Below are positions 4,701 to 38,880 of a DNA stretch of 64,000 nt, one piece after another. The position numbers were made by a program, and so were the translations under genes. The notes below the pieces were generated by a model, which worked only from the letters and a program-made list of their open reading frames with translations, made no database searches and was not told the DNA's origin. The stretch's first letter is position 1; each line of letters starts with the position of its first letter. Source of the DNA: Geosiphon pyriformis uo1 (taxonomy: Eukaryota > Fungi > Glomeromycota); assembly GCA_016748015.1 (NCBI GenBank), contig JAAOMT010000219.1:238436-302435 (forward strand), read 5' to 3'.

Positions 4701-6142
4701 TAGTATTGGAGTATTTGGGGTGGTTTTTGAGTATTGCTTCAATTTTTGTTTGCCTTTGTTGCTTGTTTCTGTTACTGATTCAAAATCAATAGAGTATTGA
4801 GACTGTACTGGATATGTTTCTTCACAGTACTTAATAATGTTTAAATTAAGTTCTTGAAAGTAAGTGACAAGTGTTTCACTGTTAAGGTCTTCAGTTCCCA
4901 ATTGTGAATAGTGTACTAAATTATTGTAAAAGTTGCTTCTAACTTCTGAGATATTGTAATTTCCAAAAAGATAATTGTTGATGTGGTTTTCAATGTATTG
5001 GTATACTGCTTTCTTGACAACTTCAATTCCGTCTGGAATGTTGAATCTTTGCTTGCAGTGGGTGTAAATTGACTGGTAATACTTTAGAGTTGTTGCATTT
5101 GGTGTGGTCACTACTTTGAAGTTGTTTTTGCTGTGTTGTTTCCATGGGAAAGCACCAAATGTTACTGGAGGTTTTTGGTCTCTTCTTAGCTCTTGTATGT
5201 TTGTTGTAATGCTGTTAATTCACGACTATGGGAAGTGCTTGAACCTCTGATAACTGAATTTTTATCTTCAAATTATCTTCTATAATTTGAACTGCTGGGC
5301 TTATAAGTGGAATGACCAATTCCGTGCCAGTTGCTTTGTGTAGTTACATTGTAGTAAATGTCAACTCTTTCCCAGGAATTGCTCATTTAGAAGCTCACTA
5401 AAAATGTGTAGTTACTTTGCTGTAAAAGTCAACTTTTCTACAGGAATCTTGTCTGTAGACTACCCTAATGATTATAATAAGAAAATAAAAGAAAAGTAAA
5501 AGAAAAGTAAAAGAAATTGAATTCTGTCAAGGGAAACGTTTTCTATCCAGGCCTGGAGTCACTAACAGTTTTACTGAAATTGGTAGCTAATTAATTTCAA
5601 AATGTTAGTTGGGTTTTGGGGATTTTCCAAGTGCAATAATTAAAGAATTTGGTTTTTTGAATTATTTGATATTTATTTCTTTTTGTGTGTGTAGAAAATG
5701 GTTCTAAGTAATAAATCTAAAGTAAAATATATTTTCTCAAAAAAAAAAGCTCTTCTTTTATACAATTTGTCGTAACACTATTCTATGAACCTGAACTTTG
5801 CTATTTTCTACAATTTCGCTGAACTAGAGATACATTTTGGCAAACTACAAGTTATTTTTGCAAACTATTAGATATTTCGGTGAACTATCAATTATTTTGG
5901 TGAATTTCTACAAATTTCAGCAAACTTTTGAATGTTACATAGTTTGGGGTATTGCATAATTGATAATCACAATTAGGTTACATTTATGTTATGTACAAAT
6001 TGGGTTATTAATTAAATGATAATTTCGGACATTTTGCTAATGTAATAAGTGATAATTTAAAATGATAATATATGCTAATTAATGATAGGAATTATAAAGA
6101 TAATTTCATGCTAAATAATATCTCTAATTTCGTCTGGTAACA

Positions 6143-31089: not shown

Positions 31090-32443
31090 ATGTCCTCAAC
31101 ACCCTCTTATACAATGCGTCACCTTCCGCCACCTGCAAATGTTCATTATTCACACACCAGTTTGAAGACCACTTTAACAAACTCTGAGCACAATCAAAAT
31201 CTCTATAAGCTTGCCTTCCATTCCAGGTGTTTTCATCAAAGGGACCTTTGGGAAGAGGTTCTTGTCTTAGAACGACTCTTTTACAAAAACAAAAGTCAGC
31301 ACCAACACTCCGGCTACTTTCGAAGAGTTGTCGAGGTTTTTGATTTTTCCATCAAATTTCATCTTTTTTTGTTTTCCAACTCCTTGGGTTTAAATTAACA
31401 CCTTTTAGGTTCGTCGCATTCTAAAAAGGCTTAAAGAACTTGACCTTTGTCAACTTCTTGTCAACCTTCTTAATTGCTTCTATGGACAAGAGAGGTATTG
31501 TGATTGTTTTAGTCATTTCTCAAGGGGCATTGACTTTTACCTTTCACCAAACTTATTAGCAAGAAAGCAAAAGAGCATTTGGAGTATATACCTTCGCGTG
31601 AAATGATATTTTACTCTTTAAATCGTTTAGCTGGAGGTGCCATGCTTATGAATAAGGTATCATCTATATATACATTTCATTGTATTGTATTTGAAATTTC
31701 GATTTTTCACGATTTGATGATCTAGGCTCTCAAGTCTTATGTTCATACATTCATGTGAGTCTTGGATCTTCAATCAATTCAATTTTTATCTTAATTATAT
31801 AAGTCTATTCTTTCACAATACAAATATAGCGATTTCCATATGCTTCTCTCACGAATGGAATTTATGAATTTCTCTATGGTTATGATTTCGTTAATTGGCC
31901 GCTTGCACGAGCTAACTCGAGCGTGGTTAAGCGAAGTAAAGGAATGTTATTTTCTATTAATTAATTGGGCTGATTGTTTTCCAGTAAGCATTTGTTTATT
32001 CAGATCAATTTATTATTTTGATTTTAATATTAAAATAAATGCTTTTGGTTCGTTTAAATCACACCATAGATTTCATCGAATGACCCCAAAGAATTGTCTC
32101 ATGGCTTCGGTTTGCCCGATACGCTAGATTTCTTGTTATCTGAGGAGAACACAACAATGTTAATTTACTATATTTTGCTGAAGATTCATATTTTCAAAAC
32201 TTATACTAAAATTTTGTATTTCTTGTTAGACATCATGTATCTCAAGCAAATAAATTAACTTTCGAAACGATTGTACCAGAAACGGAGACCAGGAGTACGA
32301 CCAAAACTCTACTTAAGGCCGAGGTTAAACAAGGGACTGATCAAGCAAATGAAAGTTCCATAGTACCTCTATATTTGCAAGATTTGACTCTGATCGAACC
32401 AATTGTCGACATAAAAGAAACCCAAAAGAAAAAGTTCCTATAA
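31090..32443 (+). CDS. RNase MRP subunit Rmp1/NEPRO-like (DUF4477) protein
   Basis: 'LERLFYKNKSQHQHSGYFRRVVEVRRILKRL' and 'FMNFSMVMISLIGRL' match the Rmp1/Nepro pattern; 3' end uncertain. Confidence 0.7.
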
Positions 32444-32945
32444 TGGTACCAAAACAGGCTCAACTGATTCCAAAGGATCTAAACTCTCTGCAGCCAGCAA
32501 AAGAAAATTCTGTGTTAATAAATATGTCGATAAAACTTCATTTTCGGAAAGGAACTCTCAATTCTAAAAAAAAAAGGTTTGACAAATTTGCCAATGAAGA
32601 TTTTGATTATGCTCCATTAATCTTTAAGCAGTACTTTATATACATTGTGTTACAAAAGTTTGGACATTTGATGATCTAAATAAAATTTGTCCAATTAAGA
32701 CATAATATATTGATTAGTACAAGATTCTTTTTTTCATTAAATTAAATAATACATTTCAATAAAAAACTTTTGTAACACACTATACTTCATTATTTGCAAG
32801 TTTTATTTCTTATATTGTGGTTTATTCGTCATAATTTTTTTAAAACCGTCATTTTTCCAATTGCTGATTGAAAATATTGAGAAATCAAAAGTTAAAATTA
32901 AATCTCGCTGATATGAAAATTTTCCATTTATTTAAAAACCCACCT

Positions 32946-35687
32946 TCAAAGATGTCCATCATCAACCTTTTCCTCAAAATTTCCCATCACCACACCTAAA
33001 TGTAATATACGCTGTCCTGATTGACATACTGGATCCATCTCTTTACCAATTACAATTCCATCTTCAGGAGCATAATAAGTTTCCACAAGATGACCGAAAA
33101 CTGAATGAAGAGTAGCAATGGGCTCGCTCTTTCTTATCCACGTATTTACGTCGGGTAGAACTATGATAATTTATTTAAGATGATAAGAACTTGAATAAGC
33201 AAATATTTGAGGTAGCAAGTTTGACTTACCGTTTAAAATACCACCACGATTGCAAAAAATCCAATACTTTCCAAGCGTAATATGCTCTAAATGTTAATAG
33301 CCATATATGTGAATAAGGAAAATAACAGAGAAATAATGATTCTTACGCTTTTCGTGCATATCACAGGATCATGTTCCGGCAATAAATTTTCTTGGGGAAT
33401 CATCTTAAGGTTGCTCAAAATGTTAGTTACACCTTGGAGCGCATTTCTGACAAACCTTTTTTGAAAAGTAGATGGGTCTCCAATTTCAACTTTTAAAATG
33501 ATAATTAGTAGGCGAGAATTAGTAACATTAATAAAAACATTTCATTATTTAACTTAAAAATTCAAACCAGTAATAGCTAGAATTCCACGTTCCATTGCAG
33601 CACCTCGTAATGAGCCGTCTGGTGAGGTATTATGGACAATAATCTAATATTTTTGAATATATAGCACTTCTTAGCTTTTTATCCTAAATTGGGATTCATA
33701 ATAACATTAATAAGGCATATTGTTTACCTGCGGATTTTGTAGTCTTGCCATACGATTTGTTCGATTATCTTTCATGTTCGCTCTAACATATAACGAATTA
33801 GCTCGCCCTTTTGACGCTGTATGCAGGTCCAACAAATGTGTAAACTTGCTAACGATGCGATCTATAAGGTTAAATGCGTAGGTTTGGGATTCGGTGCCAT
33901 TAGGCTTTCCAGGCATGACACGGTTGAGATCGGTCCCATCACTGAATGTGCGACGTCCTGCCAAATATCCGGGCACATTTGCTACGGGGCATGCTACGAC
34001 AATCCCATGTAAATTCCCGGGATTTAATTCTTGAGATATTAAACGGTGTATCAATGGAATTCCATTCAATTCGTTGCCATGTAGAGCAGCAGTCTTTTAG
34101 GGATGATGATTATTATTTTGATAGTATTATGGTAACATGTATTGATTCAAGTATTTTCCACTTACCAAACCAACTACGGGACCTGGTTTCACACCCTTGG
34201 CAAGAAACCAAGATGAACGGACATAAACTCTTGCTGTGTCAGTCCAATATTTTTCGCGGGAAGTAAAGACAAAAATTCAAGGAGACCTTATAAACTAAGC
34301 TACTGTTGACCACCAGAAAGTAATTGCCAAAAACATACCTTAGCGACAATAACAGGAACTTTGATTGGTAGGTTCATACCATCCTCCGCCAATTCAACCC
34401 AAAGATAGGAGACTTGTCCATGAGGTAAGCCTTCCAAGTCTAAAGCTTGAACAGTCCGAAGGGAAATATCTTCTGTCAATACTTGGGTAAGATTCTGAGT
34501 TGTAGGAGAAAGACCCGGAGACAAAGGAACGCGTTTTCTCCAAATCTTTTGAAGCGTCATATTTTGAATAATTATGTTGTTTAACTCATTAAAAGATTTT
34601 AATTTATTTATTGCGGTTTCACTTACTTGTCTGGCTCTTGATAACAAGTTCTCATCGCTTTCACTAGTCACAAATTTATAGCTTGTAACCAAACTCCACA
34701 GTTCTTTGCCGATAGGGGTGAAAGTATATCGATTAAGGTTGTTGCTCGGTGATGCAGTAGATGTTCGAGAAGGGGGGCTGACAACTTTAAAAGATGATTT
34801 CAGAGGCTCAGGTAGCAAAAGCATTCCTGATCCAGAATTTGGCTTCAGTGTTTCCCGAGAAGCATCAGATATAGTTATTGTGGTAGTGAGTTGTTCTAGC
34901 TCTTCAGTACTTGATGTATTATAAAAATATTTGTCGAATTTTTTGAGAATTTTTTGAAAACCAGTGATATTGGTTTGAGTAAATTCTAGATATAAACATA
35001 ATTGTGGAATTTTGCAAGTCTTAATTAATATTAGATTTGGGATTTTCTATAAACAAATTAAGCTTGCCTTTTAATGACTCAAGTGACTGCAAAAGTTTGA
35101 GAATATTTTTTCTCCTGTATCAAGAATCAAATGGGATACTATCAAGAAATTTTTTTAACATATAAATGAAAAGTGAATCAACCAGGATCTGAATTTTTTA
35201 CCAGCTTTCATATTCCTCATCTGGCATTCCTTCGTACCACTAAAAAATGTTAATTTCCGCAAGGTTGAGAAATATTCAAAGATGCATAACTCGACTTGAG
35301 TTGATACTCGCGCTATCTCCAACATTAAAAAATTGAAAAGATTAAATACCTTTCCGTCGAGTTCTTCTAGAGCTTTTCTAGACTCCTTTTCTACCCGTTC
35401 GTAGCGACCGTCCACCTTTTGTAATTCGAGAACTAACATGCCACGAAATTCTTCTACGATACTTTTTAGAAAGAGGGGGTCATTTTCGTTGGCTATTTAC
35501 AGGCGTCATCAACAATTAATGTAAGATGAAAGCATAAAACTCAAGAGCAGTTTGGTAGATATGTAAGTTTCATACCTACAAGGTTCGCAGCATTTTCTTT
35601 TAAATACTTTTTTAACGTCCGATAGTCTATATAATAATCAGACCAAGTAGGAATTGTGCGCAAGGCCAACTGTTTCGCAAACTTCAT
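32946..35687 (-). CDS. SPX domain fused to a succinylglutamate desuccinylase/aspartoacylase-family (M14 AstE/AspA) zinc hydrolase
   Basis: SPX: MKFAKQL..IPTWSDYYIDYRTLKK, F..ML..ELQKVD..Y, EFTQTNITGFQKILKKFDK. M14: ALHGNELNG, DLNRVMPG, DLHT, ITVEIG, and C-terminal barrel-sandwich 'APEDGIVIG...G.RILHLG'. The SPX end and M14 start lie in one exon and frame. Confidence 0.9.
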
Positions 35688-35794
35688 GGAAAATGATATA
35701 TTTTCGGTGGCCTGTAGAATGATTTGCTTCAGAAGTTTGAATTGCTCATATATATGGACAAAAAAACTTGATCATAATCCAAAATTAGGCCTTT

Positions 35795-35800
35795 CACGTG
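35795..35800. promoter_or_regulatory. CACGTG E-box (Pho4-type bHLH site) in the SPX-M14 / MPC1 divergent promoter
   Basis: Exact CACGTG about 108 bp upstream of the SPX gene ATG; a single hexamer, so it could be chance. Confidence 0.3.
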
Positions 35801-35948
35801 TAGGAAAGGCTTTTTATTTAGAAATAAAAAAATTTCCGAGATTCTTCATTACTTGGACTTTAAGTTTTCTGCAATAGAGTTACAATAGAATAGTTTAATT
35901 CCTCTTTGCTTTTGTGCTTTTCTCTATCGCCTTTATTTCCTTCCGAAA

Positions 35949-36749
35949 ATGACTACTTCGTGGGGCTCGCGTTTATCACAATACATTACCACTCAGGAGT
36001 TTCGTAACTATCTAATGAGGTTGTTAGAGAGAGCAGATTGGCATTCATCTCTTTACACTCAATTTGATTACAATTTATTATTCCATACTTCAGGCTTGAA
36101 TATTATTAATACCTTTTTTTATGTTAATTATTTTTAGCACTGTGAGTATTTATATTTTATGTTAAAAAATGGGCTAAATTATTGTTAAATTACTCAAAAT
36201 TTCATTTTTTAATAGCATTTTTGGGGTCCAGGTATTATATTTTCAAATGGGAAATTAAATTCTTGATAAAATTTGTGTGTAATGAAAATTATTTATTTAT
36301 AGTTGCTAATTGGGGTTTACCACTCGCGGCCATTGCTGATTTTAAAAAGGATCCAGAATTCATATCACCAAAAATGACACCAGGTAAAAATTATTGGATA
36401 TATTTGTGGTTTGATTTTTATTTGAGGAGATCAATTTCTTTAAATCCCTTGTATGATTTTATTAGCAATGATGATTTATTCAGCAGCATTTATGAGATTT
36501 GCTTGGATGGTACAACCACGAAATTATCTTCTTTTTGCTTGTCATTTTGCTAACGAGTCGGCACAGATTGTTCAAGCTTACCGTTATATTGATTATTTCA
36601 AGTATGTACTAAATAGCTTTGTTTCAATTGCTCAAAATCTATTTGGAATTGCAACAAATTTTATCATTTTTATCAAATATAGAATGGGTGGTAAAGAGAA
36701 AGCTTTCAAGGCAAAACTGGAGACACCAAAAGTGGACACAGCATCTTAA
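35949..36749 (+). CDS. MPC1: Mitochondrial pyruvate carrier 1 (with a 4-nt micro-exon)
   Basis: Spliced product reads [23 protein letters not shown]...ISPKMT...[19 protein letters not shown]. Confidence 0.96.
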
Positions 36750-37180: not shown

Positions 37181-38880
37181 ATGAACACCGAGAATTTTGA
37201 TGATACTGAGGATTTCTTTGAATCTTTTGATGGTTCTAATTACATTGAAAATGATGTTACTATAGAAGTTTCAGAAGCACTCCATGAATCTGGCGCCTTA
37301 TCCTCATACATTGCTTCTGCATTCGCTGGATATCCCGACCATTTACGCGTGCGTTTATCATTAAATCAAAAATCAATATGGCCCGACGTATCGTTGTGGT
37401 CAATACTAAAAAACTCAATTGGGAAAGATTTGAGTAAGATCACATTGCCTGTCTATTTCAATGAACCGACTTCCATGTTACAACGTATGGCCGAAGATAT
37501 GGAATATAGTGAATTATTGGATATTGCTGCTCGACATAAGGAGAGCACTGAACGCATTTTATATGTGGCCGCTTTTGCAATGAGCAATTATTCTAGCACC
37601 GTTGGACGAGTGGCAAAACCCTTTAATCCCTTATTGGTAGGCAATCTTTACGAGATGCGTGATTTAATTGAACTTTTCCATGATTCTAGAAATTTTTTTA
37701 TAGGGTGAAACATATGAATACGTCAGACCCGATAAGACCTTTCGCTATATTTCTGAACAAGTTAGTCATCATCCGGTAAAGTTTTCTATTTCATTTTTAC
37801 CTTGGTTTATTTATTGCTTGAGAAAATGTTTAATTTTATCTGAATGATTAGCCAATTAGTGCATGTTACTGTGAATCTCCACATTACGATTTTTTTTCTG
37901 AAGTAGATGTAAAGTCAAGGTTTTGGGGAAAATCTTTCGAAATATTACCAAAAGGAGTTTCCCACGTGAATTTAAAAGTTCCTAAAGAATATTGGCCAAA
38001 AGACCAGAAAGAACGAAATCCTAATTCTTTCCCAGCAAAAGGCAACCCTAAAGCATTTTCAGAACATTACTCATGGAAAAAGGTTACGACTTGCGTGAAC
38101 AATTTAATCGTTGGATCTCCTGTAATTGATCATTATGGTGATATGGTTATCACAAATCATTTGACTGGTGACAAGTGTACCTTAACATTTAAAGCTCGTG
38201 GGTGGCGTGGAAAAGATGCATATGAGATAAGGGGCGTAGTTAATGATGCACAAGGTACAGAAGTTTGGGAAATTGCCGGAAGATGGAATGAACGATTAGT
38301 TGCTCGAAGAAGTATCGGGGCTCGTCATTCATCAAATGAACATGATCTAGGGAGTGATGCAGCCGCAGAATCAGCTACCTTACCCAATGAAATAGATAAT
38401 AATGGGGCAATATCTCCGACAACCATAGAGAAACCAACAAATTCAAAATCATTAAGTCGTCGAACTATTCATTTATTATGGAAACGTGCAACTTTACCGG
38501 AAGAACCAATTCTGTTCAATCTTACCCCTTTCGCATTAACTCTTAATGATCTACCAGATTCTTTAAAGCCTTGGGTTGCACCTACTGATTCACGTATGAG
38601 GCCTGACCAACGTGCCATGGAAAATGGCAACTATGATTTAGCCAGTTCTGAGAAGACTCGTCTCGAAGAAAAACAACGCTCTAAACGAGCTGCGCGTGAA
38701 CAAGGAGAAATTGAAGAATGGAAACCACGTTGGTTTAAACGCGATGTTGAGCCTGATACCACCGAAGGATATTGGTTATTTAATCATGAGTATTGGCAAG
38801 AACGTGAACGGACTGGGAAAGAAAAAACCGAGGGAACTGGGCCTGGTAAATGGAATATCCAAGATGATGATATATTCTAA
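37181..38880 (+). CDS. Oxysterol-binding protein-related protein (short ORP/Osh, ORD only)
   Basis: [52 protein letters not shown] (split by an intron), [16 protein letters not shown]. Confidence 0.95.

Follow-up and report, generated by a model that had tools for sequence, protein, structure and literature searches.

Characterised partners of the SPX domain move, store, scavenge or signal phosphate, and the SPX partners that have been reviewed either handle phosphate directly or signal it (PMC7381174). The SPX pocket is located between helices 1, 2 and 4, with Y19, Y22 and a lysine cluster (PMC10167327). For the zinc amidohydrolases of family M14, the residue roles used here (zinc triad, carboxylate clamp, catalytic Glu) are taken from CphZ (PMC9974463), and in A/B-type M14 enzymes an Arg at the base of the pocket confers acidic specificity (PMC9925722). 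We examined a gene of Geosiphon pyriformis lying in a window of 64 kb (the whole stretch of DNA analysed), in which a first-pass annotation had seen an SPX domain joined to an AstE/AspA-type hydrolase. A transcript contig spanning both domains, and Pfam matches for each of them, bear this out, and the SPX-hydrolase fusion is real and expressed.

The gene is on the minus strand, with its ATG at 35687 and its stop codon at 32948-32946, and its 12 coding exons, separated by 11 coding introns, encode a product of 590 aa (Table 1). The splice model, which keeps an open frame over canonical introns and one GC-AG intron, was read by hand from ATG 35687 to the stop, and transcript contigs were then compared over 32300-36300. 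All ten predicted introns were seen in public transcript contigs, and the start codon and minus-strand N-terminal exons of the first-pass annotation were confirmed by them. That annotation had also taken 34985-34339 as one stop-free exon and the fusion as independent of splicing, but an eleventh intron, in frame and 81 nt long (34626-34546), is removed in both runs that gave spliced contigs, and the fusion does rest on splices, which are now observed. In run X3, one spliced contig of 1815 nt, from 35694 to 32944, spans SPX through the stop codon, and in run X2, which belongs to another study, the same joints are spread over several contigs. Since run X3 and the probable source DNA share one sample, it is run X2 that provides independent support, and the contigs of both are assemblies rather than single molecules. 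A gene-prediction artefact, or two adjacent genes, was ruled out by the spliced contigs together with ~100 orthologous fusions. The public record of the gene is G9A89_008377, whose protein, KAG9301525.1, matched exon by exon at 585/585 residues and has six extra residues from another acceptor, 18 nt upstream at exon 11, which the contigs do not back. The spliced model was searched exon by exon, the exons being joined only for a check of frame and length, and KAG9301525.1 stood in for it in alignment and folding.

Table 1. Features of the SPX-hydrolase gene and its upstream region, in positions of the window
Feature	Position	Strand	Evidence
Divergent intergenic region, 261 nt, between fusion and mitochondrial pyruvate carrier gene	35688..35948	.	
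Exon 1 (aa 1-37): SPX helices 1-2, Y19, Y22 (35624), K26 (35612)	35576..35687	-	Pfam SPX E 5e-10, contigs, public protein
Exon 2: SPX helix 3	35350..35492	-	contigs, public protein, AlphaFold model
Exon 3	35202..35239	-	contigs, public protein
Exon 4	35068..35114	-	contigs, public protein
GC-AG intron, 82 nt	34986..35067	-	contig joint, + strand ends CT..GC
Exon 5: SPX helix 4, Ser/Thr-rich insert, helix 5, start of helix 6	34627..34985	-	Pfam, contigs, model, conservation
Exon 5 lysine cluster K125/K128/K129/K132	34953-34930	-	
Ser/Thr-rich low-confidence insertion, aa ~136-203	34717..34920	-	alignment, pLDDT, SPX structure match
GT-AG intron, 81 nt, in frame, stop-free, within SPX helix 6	34546..34626	-	skipped in X2 and X3 contigs; absent from public protein
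Exon 6: SPX end, linker ~20 aa, hydrolase start (aa 263 at 34458)	34339..34545	-	contigs, public protein, structure match
Exon 7, 30 nt	34166..34195	-	contigs
Alternative longer intron, acceptor at 34030	34030..34165	-	run X2 only, depth 26 vs 41
Exon 8: H317, E320, H403 (Zn ligands), R360, N369, R370 (oxyanion/carboxylate binding), R409	33728..34093	-	Pfam E 3e-24, conservation
Exon 9: invariant H438 and R447 (33607; candidate specificity residue)	33568..33643	-	conservation
Exon 10: catalytic E461 (33487-33485)	33347..33489	-	contigs, conservation
Exon 11	33230..33266	-	contigs, public protein
Exon 12: small beta domain, conserved R-I-L-H-L-G, eukaryote-specific tail D-D-G-H-L (32963-32949), stop	32946..33160	-	alignment, conservation
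3' UTR intron, 80 nt, begins 2 nt past stop codon	32864..32943	-	run X2

The alternative acceptor at 34030, which was absent from run X3, drops HGNE, shifts the frame and leads to a stop after one codon, leaving SPX and a stub (~313 aa), and represents either unproductive splicing or a product with SPX alone. The 3' contig of run X2 (32944-34030) was about six times deeper than the 5' contig (34338-35720; 124 vs 21), which reflects either 3' bias or a shorter transcript; run X3 shows one even contig. The mitochondrial pyruvate carrier gene (35949-36749), also transcribed, stands head-to-head with the fusion and has an oxysterol-binding protein gene (37181-38880) beyond it, and the fusion is flanked on its opposite side by NEPRO-like and PIG-L genes. 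One CACGTG, a Pho4-type box, is found at 35795-35800, 108 nt upstream of the ATG. Regulation through this box was set aside, as the window holds six CACGTG, a number reached in 10/100 shuffles, and an exact match was found upstream in only 1/8 orthologue loci (Linderina); the motif is a weak lead.

In Pfam searches of single exons, SPX was matched in exon 1 (E 5e-10) and an SPX C-terminal segment at E 0.004, and the PF03105 score, 64.6 bits for KAG9301525.1 and 40.4 for exon 1 by itself, exceeds the curated cut-off of 27.8 in both cases. The AlphaFold model of KAG9301525.1 had a mean pLDDT of 86 and a pTM of 0.63, and because of the latter it leaves the contact between SPX and enzyme undefined. 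By structure search, residues 1-242 of the model align as a six-helix SPX fold to 8tyu, 5iiq and 5ijp, and the InsP6-bound SPX structures 5ijp and 5ijj are matched at Z 14.5-16. The fold thus extends to ~aa 240, and the true linker is ~20 aa. The Ser/Thr-rich stretch, previously taken for the linker, sits between SPX helices 4 and 5, is missing from many orthologues in the alignment and has a pLDDT under 50 at aa 156-195; since the SPX structures align over 1-242 around it, we regard it as a disordered insert inside SPX.

The basic patches quoted in the first-pass annotation are retained: the six pocket residues scored (Y22, K26, K125, K128, K129 and K132) are all present in Geosiphon and are under conservation, being intact in 62 of 72 complete orthologues. 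Judged from these residues, inositol pyrophosphates quite likely bind the SPX domain and gate the hydrolase. In several Coemansia and Kickxella orthologues (n=4 rows) the pocket is changed, with Glu at K128 and K132 lost, possibly as decay of a putative inositol-phosphate pocket in one lineage. A constitutive enzyme, with SPX serving as a docking module or as an inositol-pyrophosphate sensor acting on other partners, would suit this erosion, the control of VTC by SPX-SPX contacts (PMC10167327) and the case of the analogous Gde1, whose control by SPX still awaited confirmation in 2020 (PMC7381174), but we consider it highly unlikely, given that the same fusion keeps its pocket across Amoebozoa, Rhizaria and fungi in the alignment.

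Orthologues were sought first with the SPX-linker exon and then with the Ambispora orthologue as query, and about 100 proteins with both domains were found among the ranked matches; an ESM Atlas search with the SPX-linker exon gave nothing useful. The fungal carriers were Ambispora, Paraglomus, Mortierellales, Endogonales, Calcarisporiella, Basidiobolus, Entomophthorales, Kickxellomycotina, chytrids, Saitoella and Pneumocystis, and the non-fungal ones Acanthamoeba, Balamuthia, Spongospora and Fonticula, so that basal Glomeromycotina, Zoopagomycota and Amoebozoa are among the groups with the fusion. The Fonticula protein has a divergent SPX-like start, and the Entrophospora gene model begins within SPX. 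Among the ranked matches that precede the first bacterial proteins, none came from Rhizophagus or Gigaspora (Glomeraceae, Gigasporaceae), Mucorales, budding yeast, Pezizomycotina, Basidiomycota, plants or animals, and these absences suggest losses, among the matches listed. The combination of SPX and AstE/AspA is an ancient, patchily pan-eukaryotic architecture. In the hydrolase tree, the eukaryote-type rows all fall on one side of a branch with support 100/99, and the fungi group at 100/99 in a species-like order; this tree is midpoint-rooted with no outgroup, and the donor and timing of a transfer are outside its reach. A recent bacterial transfer into Geosiphon was ruled out by the 11 coding introns, the eukaryote branch and the species-like fungal grouping. 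A reading of the protein as a P/N node of AM symbiosis is not supported by a family that occurs in amoebae, chytrids and Pneumocystis, with none from Rhizophagus or Gigaspora among the ranked matches.

In the exon that carries HGNE, Pfam AstE_AspA_cat was matched at E 3e-24, and PF24827 (M14 AstE/AspA-like) scored 115.9 bits against a cut-off of 25. The motifs described earlier for zinc binding, carboxylate binding and catalysis (HGNE, DLHT, DLNR and VEIG) are all intact, and each of H317, E320, H403, E461, R360, N369 and R370 is retained in all or all but one of the 102 eukaryote-type rows. Residues 263-587 of the model match DoeB-type enzymes in the structure search, ranked by Z as 3cdx (36.3), DoeB (6twm, 34.6) and CphZ (8ein, 28.8), followed by AstE (19-20.5). 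At the level of named families, KAG9301525.1 gave no match to TIGR03242 (AstE) at E 0.01, and the bacterial kin reached 22 bits against a cut-off of 305.65; scores were 63.7 bits for TIGR02994 (DoeB/EutE; equivalog cut-off 402.7) and 26 bits for NF002601 (aspartoacylase; equivalog cut-off 180), both short of their thresholds. The domain is thus predicted to work like an M14 small-molecule amidohydrolase outside every characterised subfamily. The substrate of DoeB has a basic side chain. By sequence offset, the invariant R447 aligns with an Asp of DoeB, and because it sits where the basic-side-chain enzymes DoeB and CphZ carry acidic residues, an acidic side chain is the best guess for the substrate; N369-R370 imply a free alpha-carboxylate on it. 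The tail, D-G-H plus up to three residues, occurs in 92/98 eukaryote-type proteins and 0/8 bacterial rows; a peroxisomal signal in it is unlikely, since many orthologues end in D-G-H or D-G-H-T/K/Q.

The nearest stand-alone kin of the hydrolase are ~50% identical, mostly from Bacteroidota, and share an operon with two ATP-grasp genes, one for a protein of ~480-540 aa with no Pfam family (480-510 aa in the bacterial operon copies), here called lig500, and one for a glutathione-synthetase-like (GshB-like) protein that scores below its family cut-off. At least one of the two ligases was present in 61 of 62 bacterial loci with enough flank, and both in 51, in a set that is mostly from Saprospiraceae and so not independent, and in which gene order varies. 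In one bacterial locus, two M14 paralogues (locus positions 1858-2916 and 5001-6059) flank the ligases, and the gene order differs. Other neighbours, counted in 88 bacterial loci, were arginine decarboxylase (27), agmatinase (22), a deoxyhypusine/homospermidine-synthase-like gene (15), CorA (9) and MscS (8), and polyamine genes occurred in 40 of 162 loci; no ectoine genes were found among the frequent neighbours. No paper was found on this bacterial operon of lig500, GshB-like protein and M14 hydrolase of the N-H type. The carboxylate site reads N-H, not N-R, in 81 of the 89 nearest bacterial enzymes, and because of this replacement the bacterial substrate may differ from the eukaryotic one. 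A rule that N-R goes without GshB and N-H with it was dropped, the numbers (104/109 N-H loci with GshB vs 0/2 N-R loci with enough flank) being too few. As a guess, the N-H site in three-gene operons would fit a second ligase that caps the carboxylate, perhaps with polyamine.

The neighbours, as well as the fold, bear on the identity that had been put forward for the enzyme, that of an AstE-like succinylglutamate desuccinylase linking arginine catabolism to polyphosphate flux in glomeromycotan fungi. A site surrounded by basic residues would accommodate an acidic molecule such as N-succinyl-Glu, and arginine decarboxylase is near 27/88 bacterial loci, as just described. We nevertheless give this identity very little credence: there is no TIGR03242 match, AstE structures are remote (Z 19-20 vs 29-36 for DoeB/CphZ), ATP-grasp ligases recur beside the bacterial kin, with no ast genes or operon among the frequent neighbours, and the distribution of the family, with amoebae, chytrids and Pneumocystis in it and neither Rhizophagus nor Gigaspora among the ranked matches, speaks against it as well.

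The model of lig500 is a permuted ATP-grasp fold, nearest to 3k1t, a putative gamma-Glu-Cys synthetase (Z 14.6, rmsd 4.7, 325 aligned), and to glutathionylspermidine synthetases. Its homologues adjoin the SPX-hydrolase gene in eukaryotes as well: head-to-head at 331 nt in Acanthamoeba, in tandem at 477 nt in Balamuthia, and head-to-head on two environmental eukaryote contigs, one of 629 kb from ENA, whose hydrolase groups near Fonticula, and one from JGI, whose hydrolase belongs to a third branch of the tree. These four protist-type loci thus come from three branches of the hydrolase tree, the ATP-grasp motifs are kept in the eukaryotic ligase homologues, and a GshB-like gene is in none of the eukaryotic loci. 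No ligase was found within 10 kb in Saitoella, Linderina, Entomortierella, Calcarisporiella and Fonticula or in the 64-kb Geosiphon window, so that 4/10 informative eukaryotic loci are linked, and the six unlinked ones are five fungal loci (including Geosiphon) and Fonticula. We infer that this linkage is beyond chance where the genes are single-copy and the genomes measure tens of megabases. An ESM Atlas cluster with the lig500 fold (TM 0.81) holds 85 proteins, 86% of them eukaryotic, and is commonest in Mucoromycota; the fungal presence of the ligase rests on this one automatic taxon label, and in searches for a named fungal ligase every match was prokaryotic, environmental or from a giant virus. 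An intact lig500 homologue (572-1924 of its locus), 38-42% identical to the bacterial ones, is carried by a metagenome-assembled genome of a giant virus and belongs with a small clade of environmental relatives.

These data can be combined in a pathway of two enzymes, acquired from bacteria early in the history of eukaryotes, in which the M14 AstE/AspA-like zinc amidohydrolase (DoeB/CphZ fold) with its N-terminal SPX sensor would be the breakdown arm. The permuted ATP-grasp ligase lig500 would join a carboxylic acid and an amino acid, consuming ATP, and the SPX-hydrolase would cleave the resulting amide by means of a zinc-bound water activated by E461. Inositol pyrophosphates on SPX would set the activity of the hydrolase, in either direction, and the metabolite pool would then track phosphate status. 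We assign a probability of about 0.5 to this explanation as a whole, an SPX-gated hydrolase of the amide product of lig500. For its parts, we lean towards the hydrolase acting on the ligase product. That an ancient eukaryotic ligase/hydrolase pathway for an unknown small amide was co-inherited from a bacterial operon, with its breakdown directly controlled by inositol pyrophosphates, has slightly less than an even chance. An acidic acyl-amino acid, with its alpha-carboxylate free and its side chain acidic (for instance a gamma-glutamyl-glutamate-like isodipeptide), is a tentative proposal for the product from the aligned pocket residues, and an organic anion or osmolyte that accumulates when phosphate is scarce and is degraded as inositol pyrophosphates rise seems unlikely.

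Two other readings of the enzyme pair were weighed. Under SPX control, the protein could act generally on N-acyl-amino acids as a deacylase resembling DoeB or aspartoacylase, with the ligase link ancestral and functionless in fungi, as the top family and fold matches (DoeB and aspartoacylase-like proteins) and the lack of linkage in five fungal loci would allow. We think this rather unlikely, since the DoeB model gives 64 where 403 is required, the charge of the pocket is opposite to that of DoeB and the ligase cluster is commonest in Mucoromycota; unlinked pathway genes are also normal in fungi. Alternatively, the pair could act at the level of protein, the ligase adding glutamates to a protein C-terminus in the manner of RimK or TTL and the hydrolase removing them like a cytosolic carboxypeptidase, under phosphate control. 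The N-R carboxylate clamp with an Arg at the candidate specificity site, the weak RimK-family matches of the ligases and the presence of CCP5 among the fold matches agree with such a scheme, but the hydrolase fold is of the small-substrate DoeB/CphZ type (Z 29-36 vs 16 for CCP5), the ligase is nearest to small-molecule permuted ATP-grasp enzymes, and no recurring target-protein gene was seen among the frequent neighbours of the bacterial loci, making it very unlikely.

No paper combining SPX with the M14 AstE/AspA family was found in a literature search of papers open without subscription, supplementary figures excluded, which agrees with the first-pass annotation, and targeted reading of an SPX review, one survey of dinoflagellates and two of early fungi did not bring the fusion up. 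In UniRef these proteins carry the label 'SPX domain-containing protein', so that databases already show the architecture. What is new here is that the bacterial kin stand in operons with an uncharacterised permuted ATP-grasp ligase, and that a eukaryotic homologue of this ligase adjoins the fusion in four protist-type loci. With the ligase as its neighbour, an enzyme that was an orphan gains a pathway that can be tested, and in a soluble, single-chain protein SPX allostery on the enzyme is directly assayable, a question that was open for Gde1 in 2020 (PMC7381174). If SPX-gated hydrolysis of a ligase-made amide is correct, the inositol-pyrophosphate signal would steer amino-acid or solute metabolism, beyond phosphate handling, in early-diverging fungi, Pneumocystis and amoebae. 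That the reduced genome of Pneumocystis has kept the gene hints that its function matters, and the fusion may have been overlooked because budding yeast, plants and animals are missing from the ranked matches.

Among known systems, Gde1 (SPX-ankyrin-glycerophosphodiesterase), Vtc2-5, Pho81, Pho87/90/91 and Syg1/XPR1 share with the Geosiphon protein an N-terminal six-helix SPX fused to an effector, and Gde1 and other SPX proteins also share the pocket of Y19/Y22/K26 and helix-4 lysines (SPX structures at Z 14.5-19.5), but in Geosiphon the effector is an amide hydrolase, for which no substrate containing phosphate is evident. AstE and aspartoacylase have Pfam AstE_AspA_cat and the catalytic motifs in common with it, although their folds are more remote (Z 16.8-20.5) and no family-level match is above cut-off. 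Glutathionylspermidine synthetase/amidase, and ATP-grasp-type GshA with GshB, share the logic of the proposed pair, an ATP-grasp ligase with an amide hydrolase as its counterpart, and lig500 is structurally nearest to the group of glutathionylspermidine synthetase and ATP-grasp GshA at an identity of only 10-15%; unlike glutathionylspermidine amidase, the hydrolase here is M14, not CHAP, and the eukaryotic loci are without a GshB-like gene. DoeB/EutE (N-alpha-acetyl-diaminobutyrate deacetylase, 6twm) and the uncharacterised 3cdx share the two-domain fold, the H-E-H zinc site, the R/N-R clamp and the catalytic Glu (Z 34.6-36.3, rmsd 2.3-2.5), whereas the Geosiphon enzyme is 22% identical to DoeB, is far under the family cut-off and has Arg where DoeB, which is without SPX, has Asp. 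CphZ (beta-Asp-Arg dipeptide hydrolase, 8ein; PMC9974463) differs in its acidic D222/E223 pocket, which corresponds to L446/R447, and in D181, which corresponds to A405, as mapped by offset from the Zn histidine only, and its H573 may match K366 by end offset; at 15% identity it has the same fold (Z 28.8) and provides a family precedent for isopeptide cleavage.
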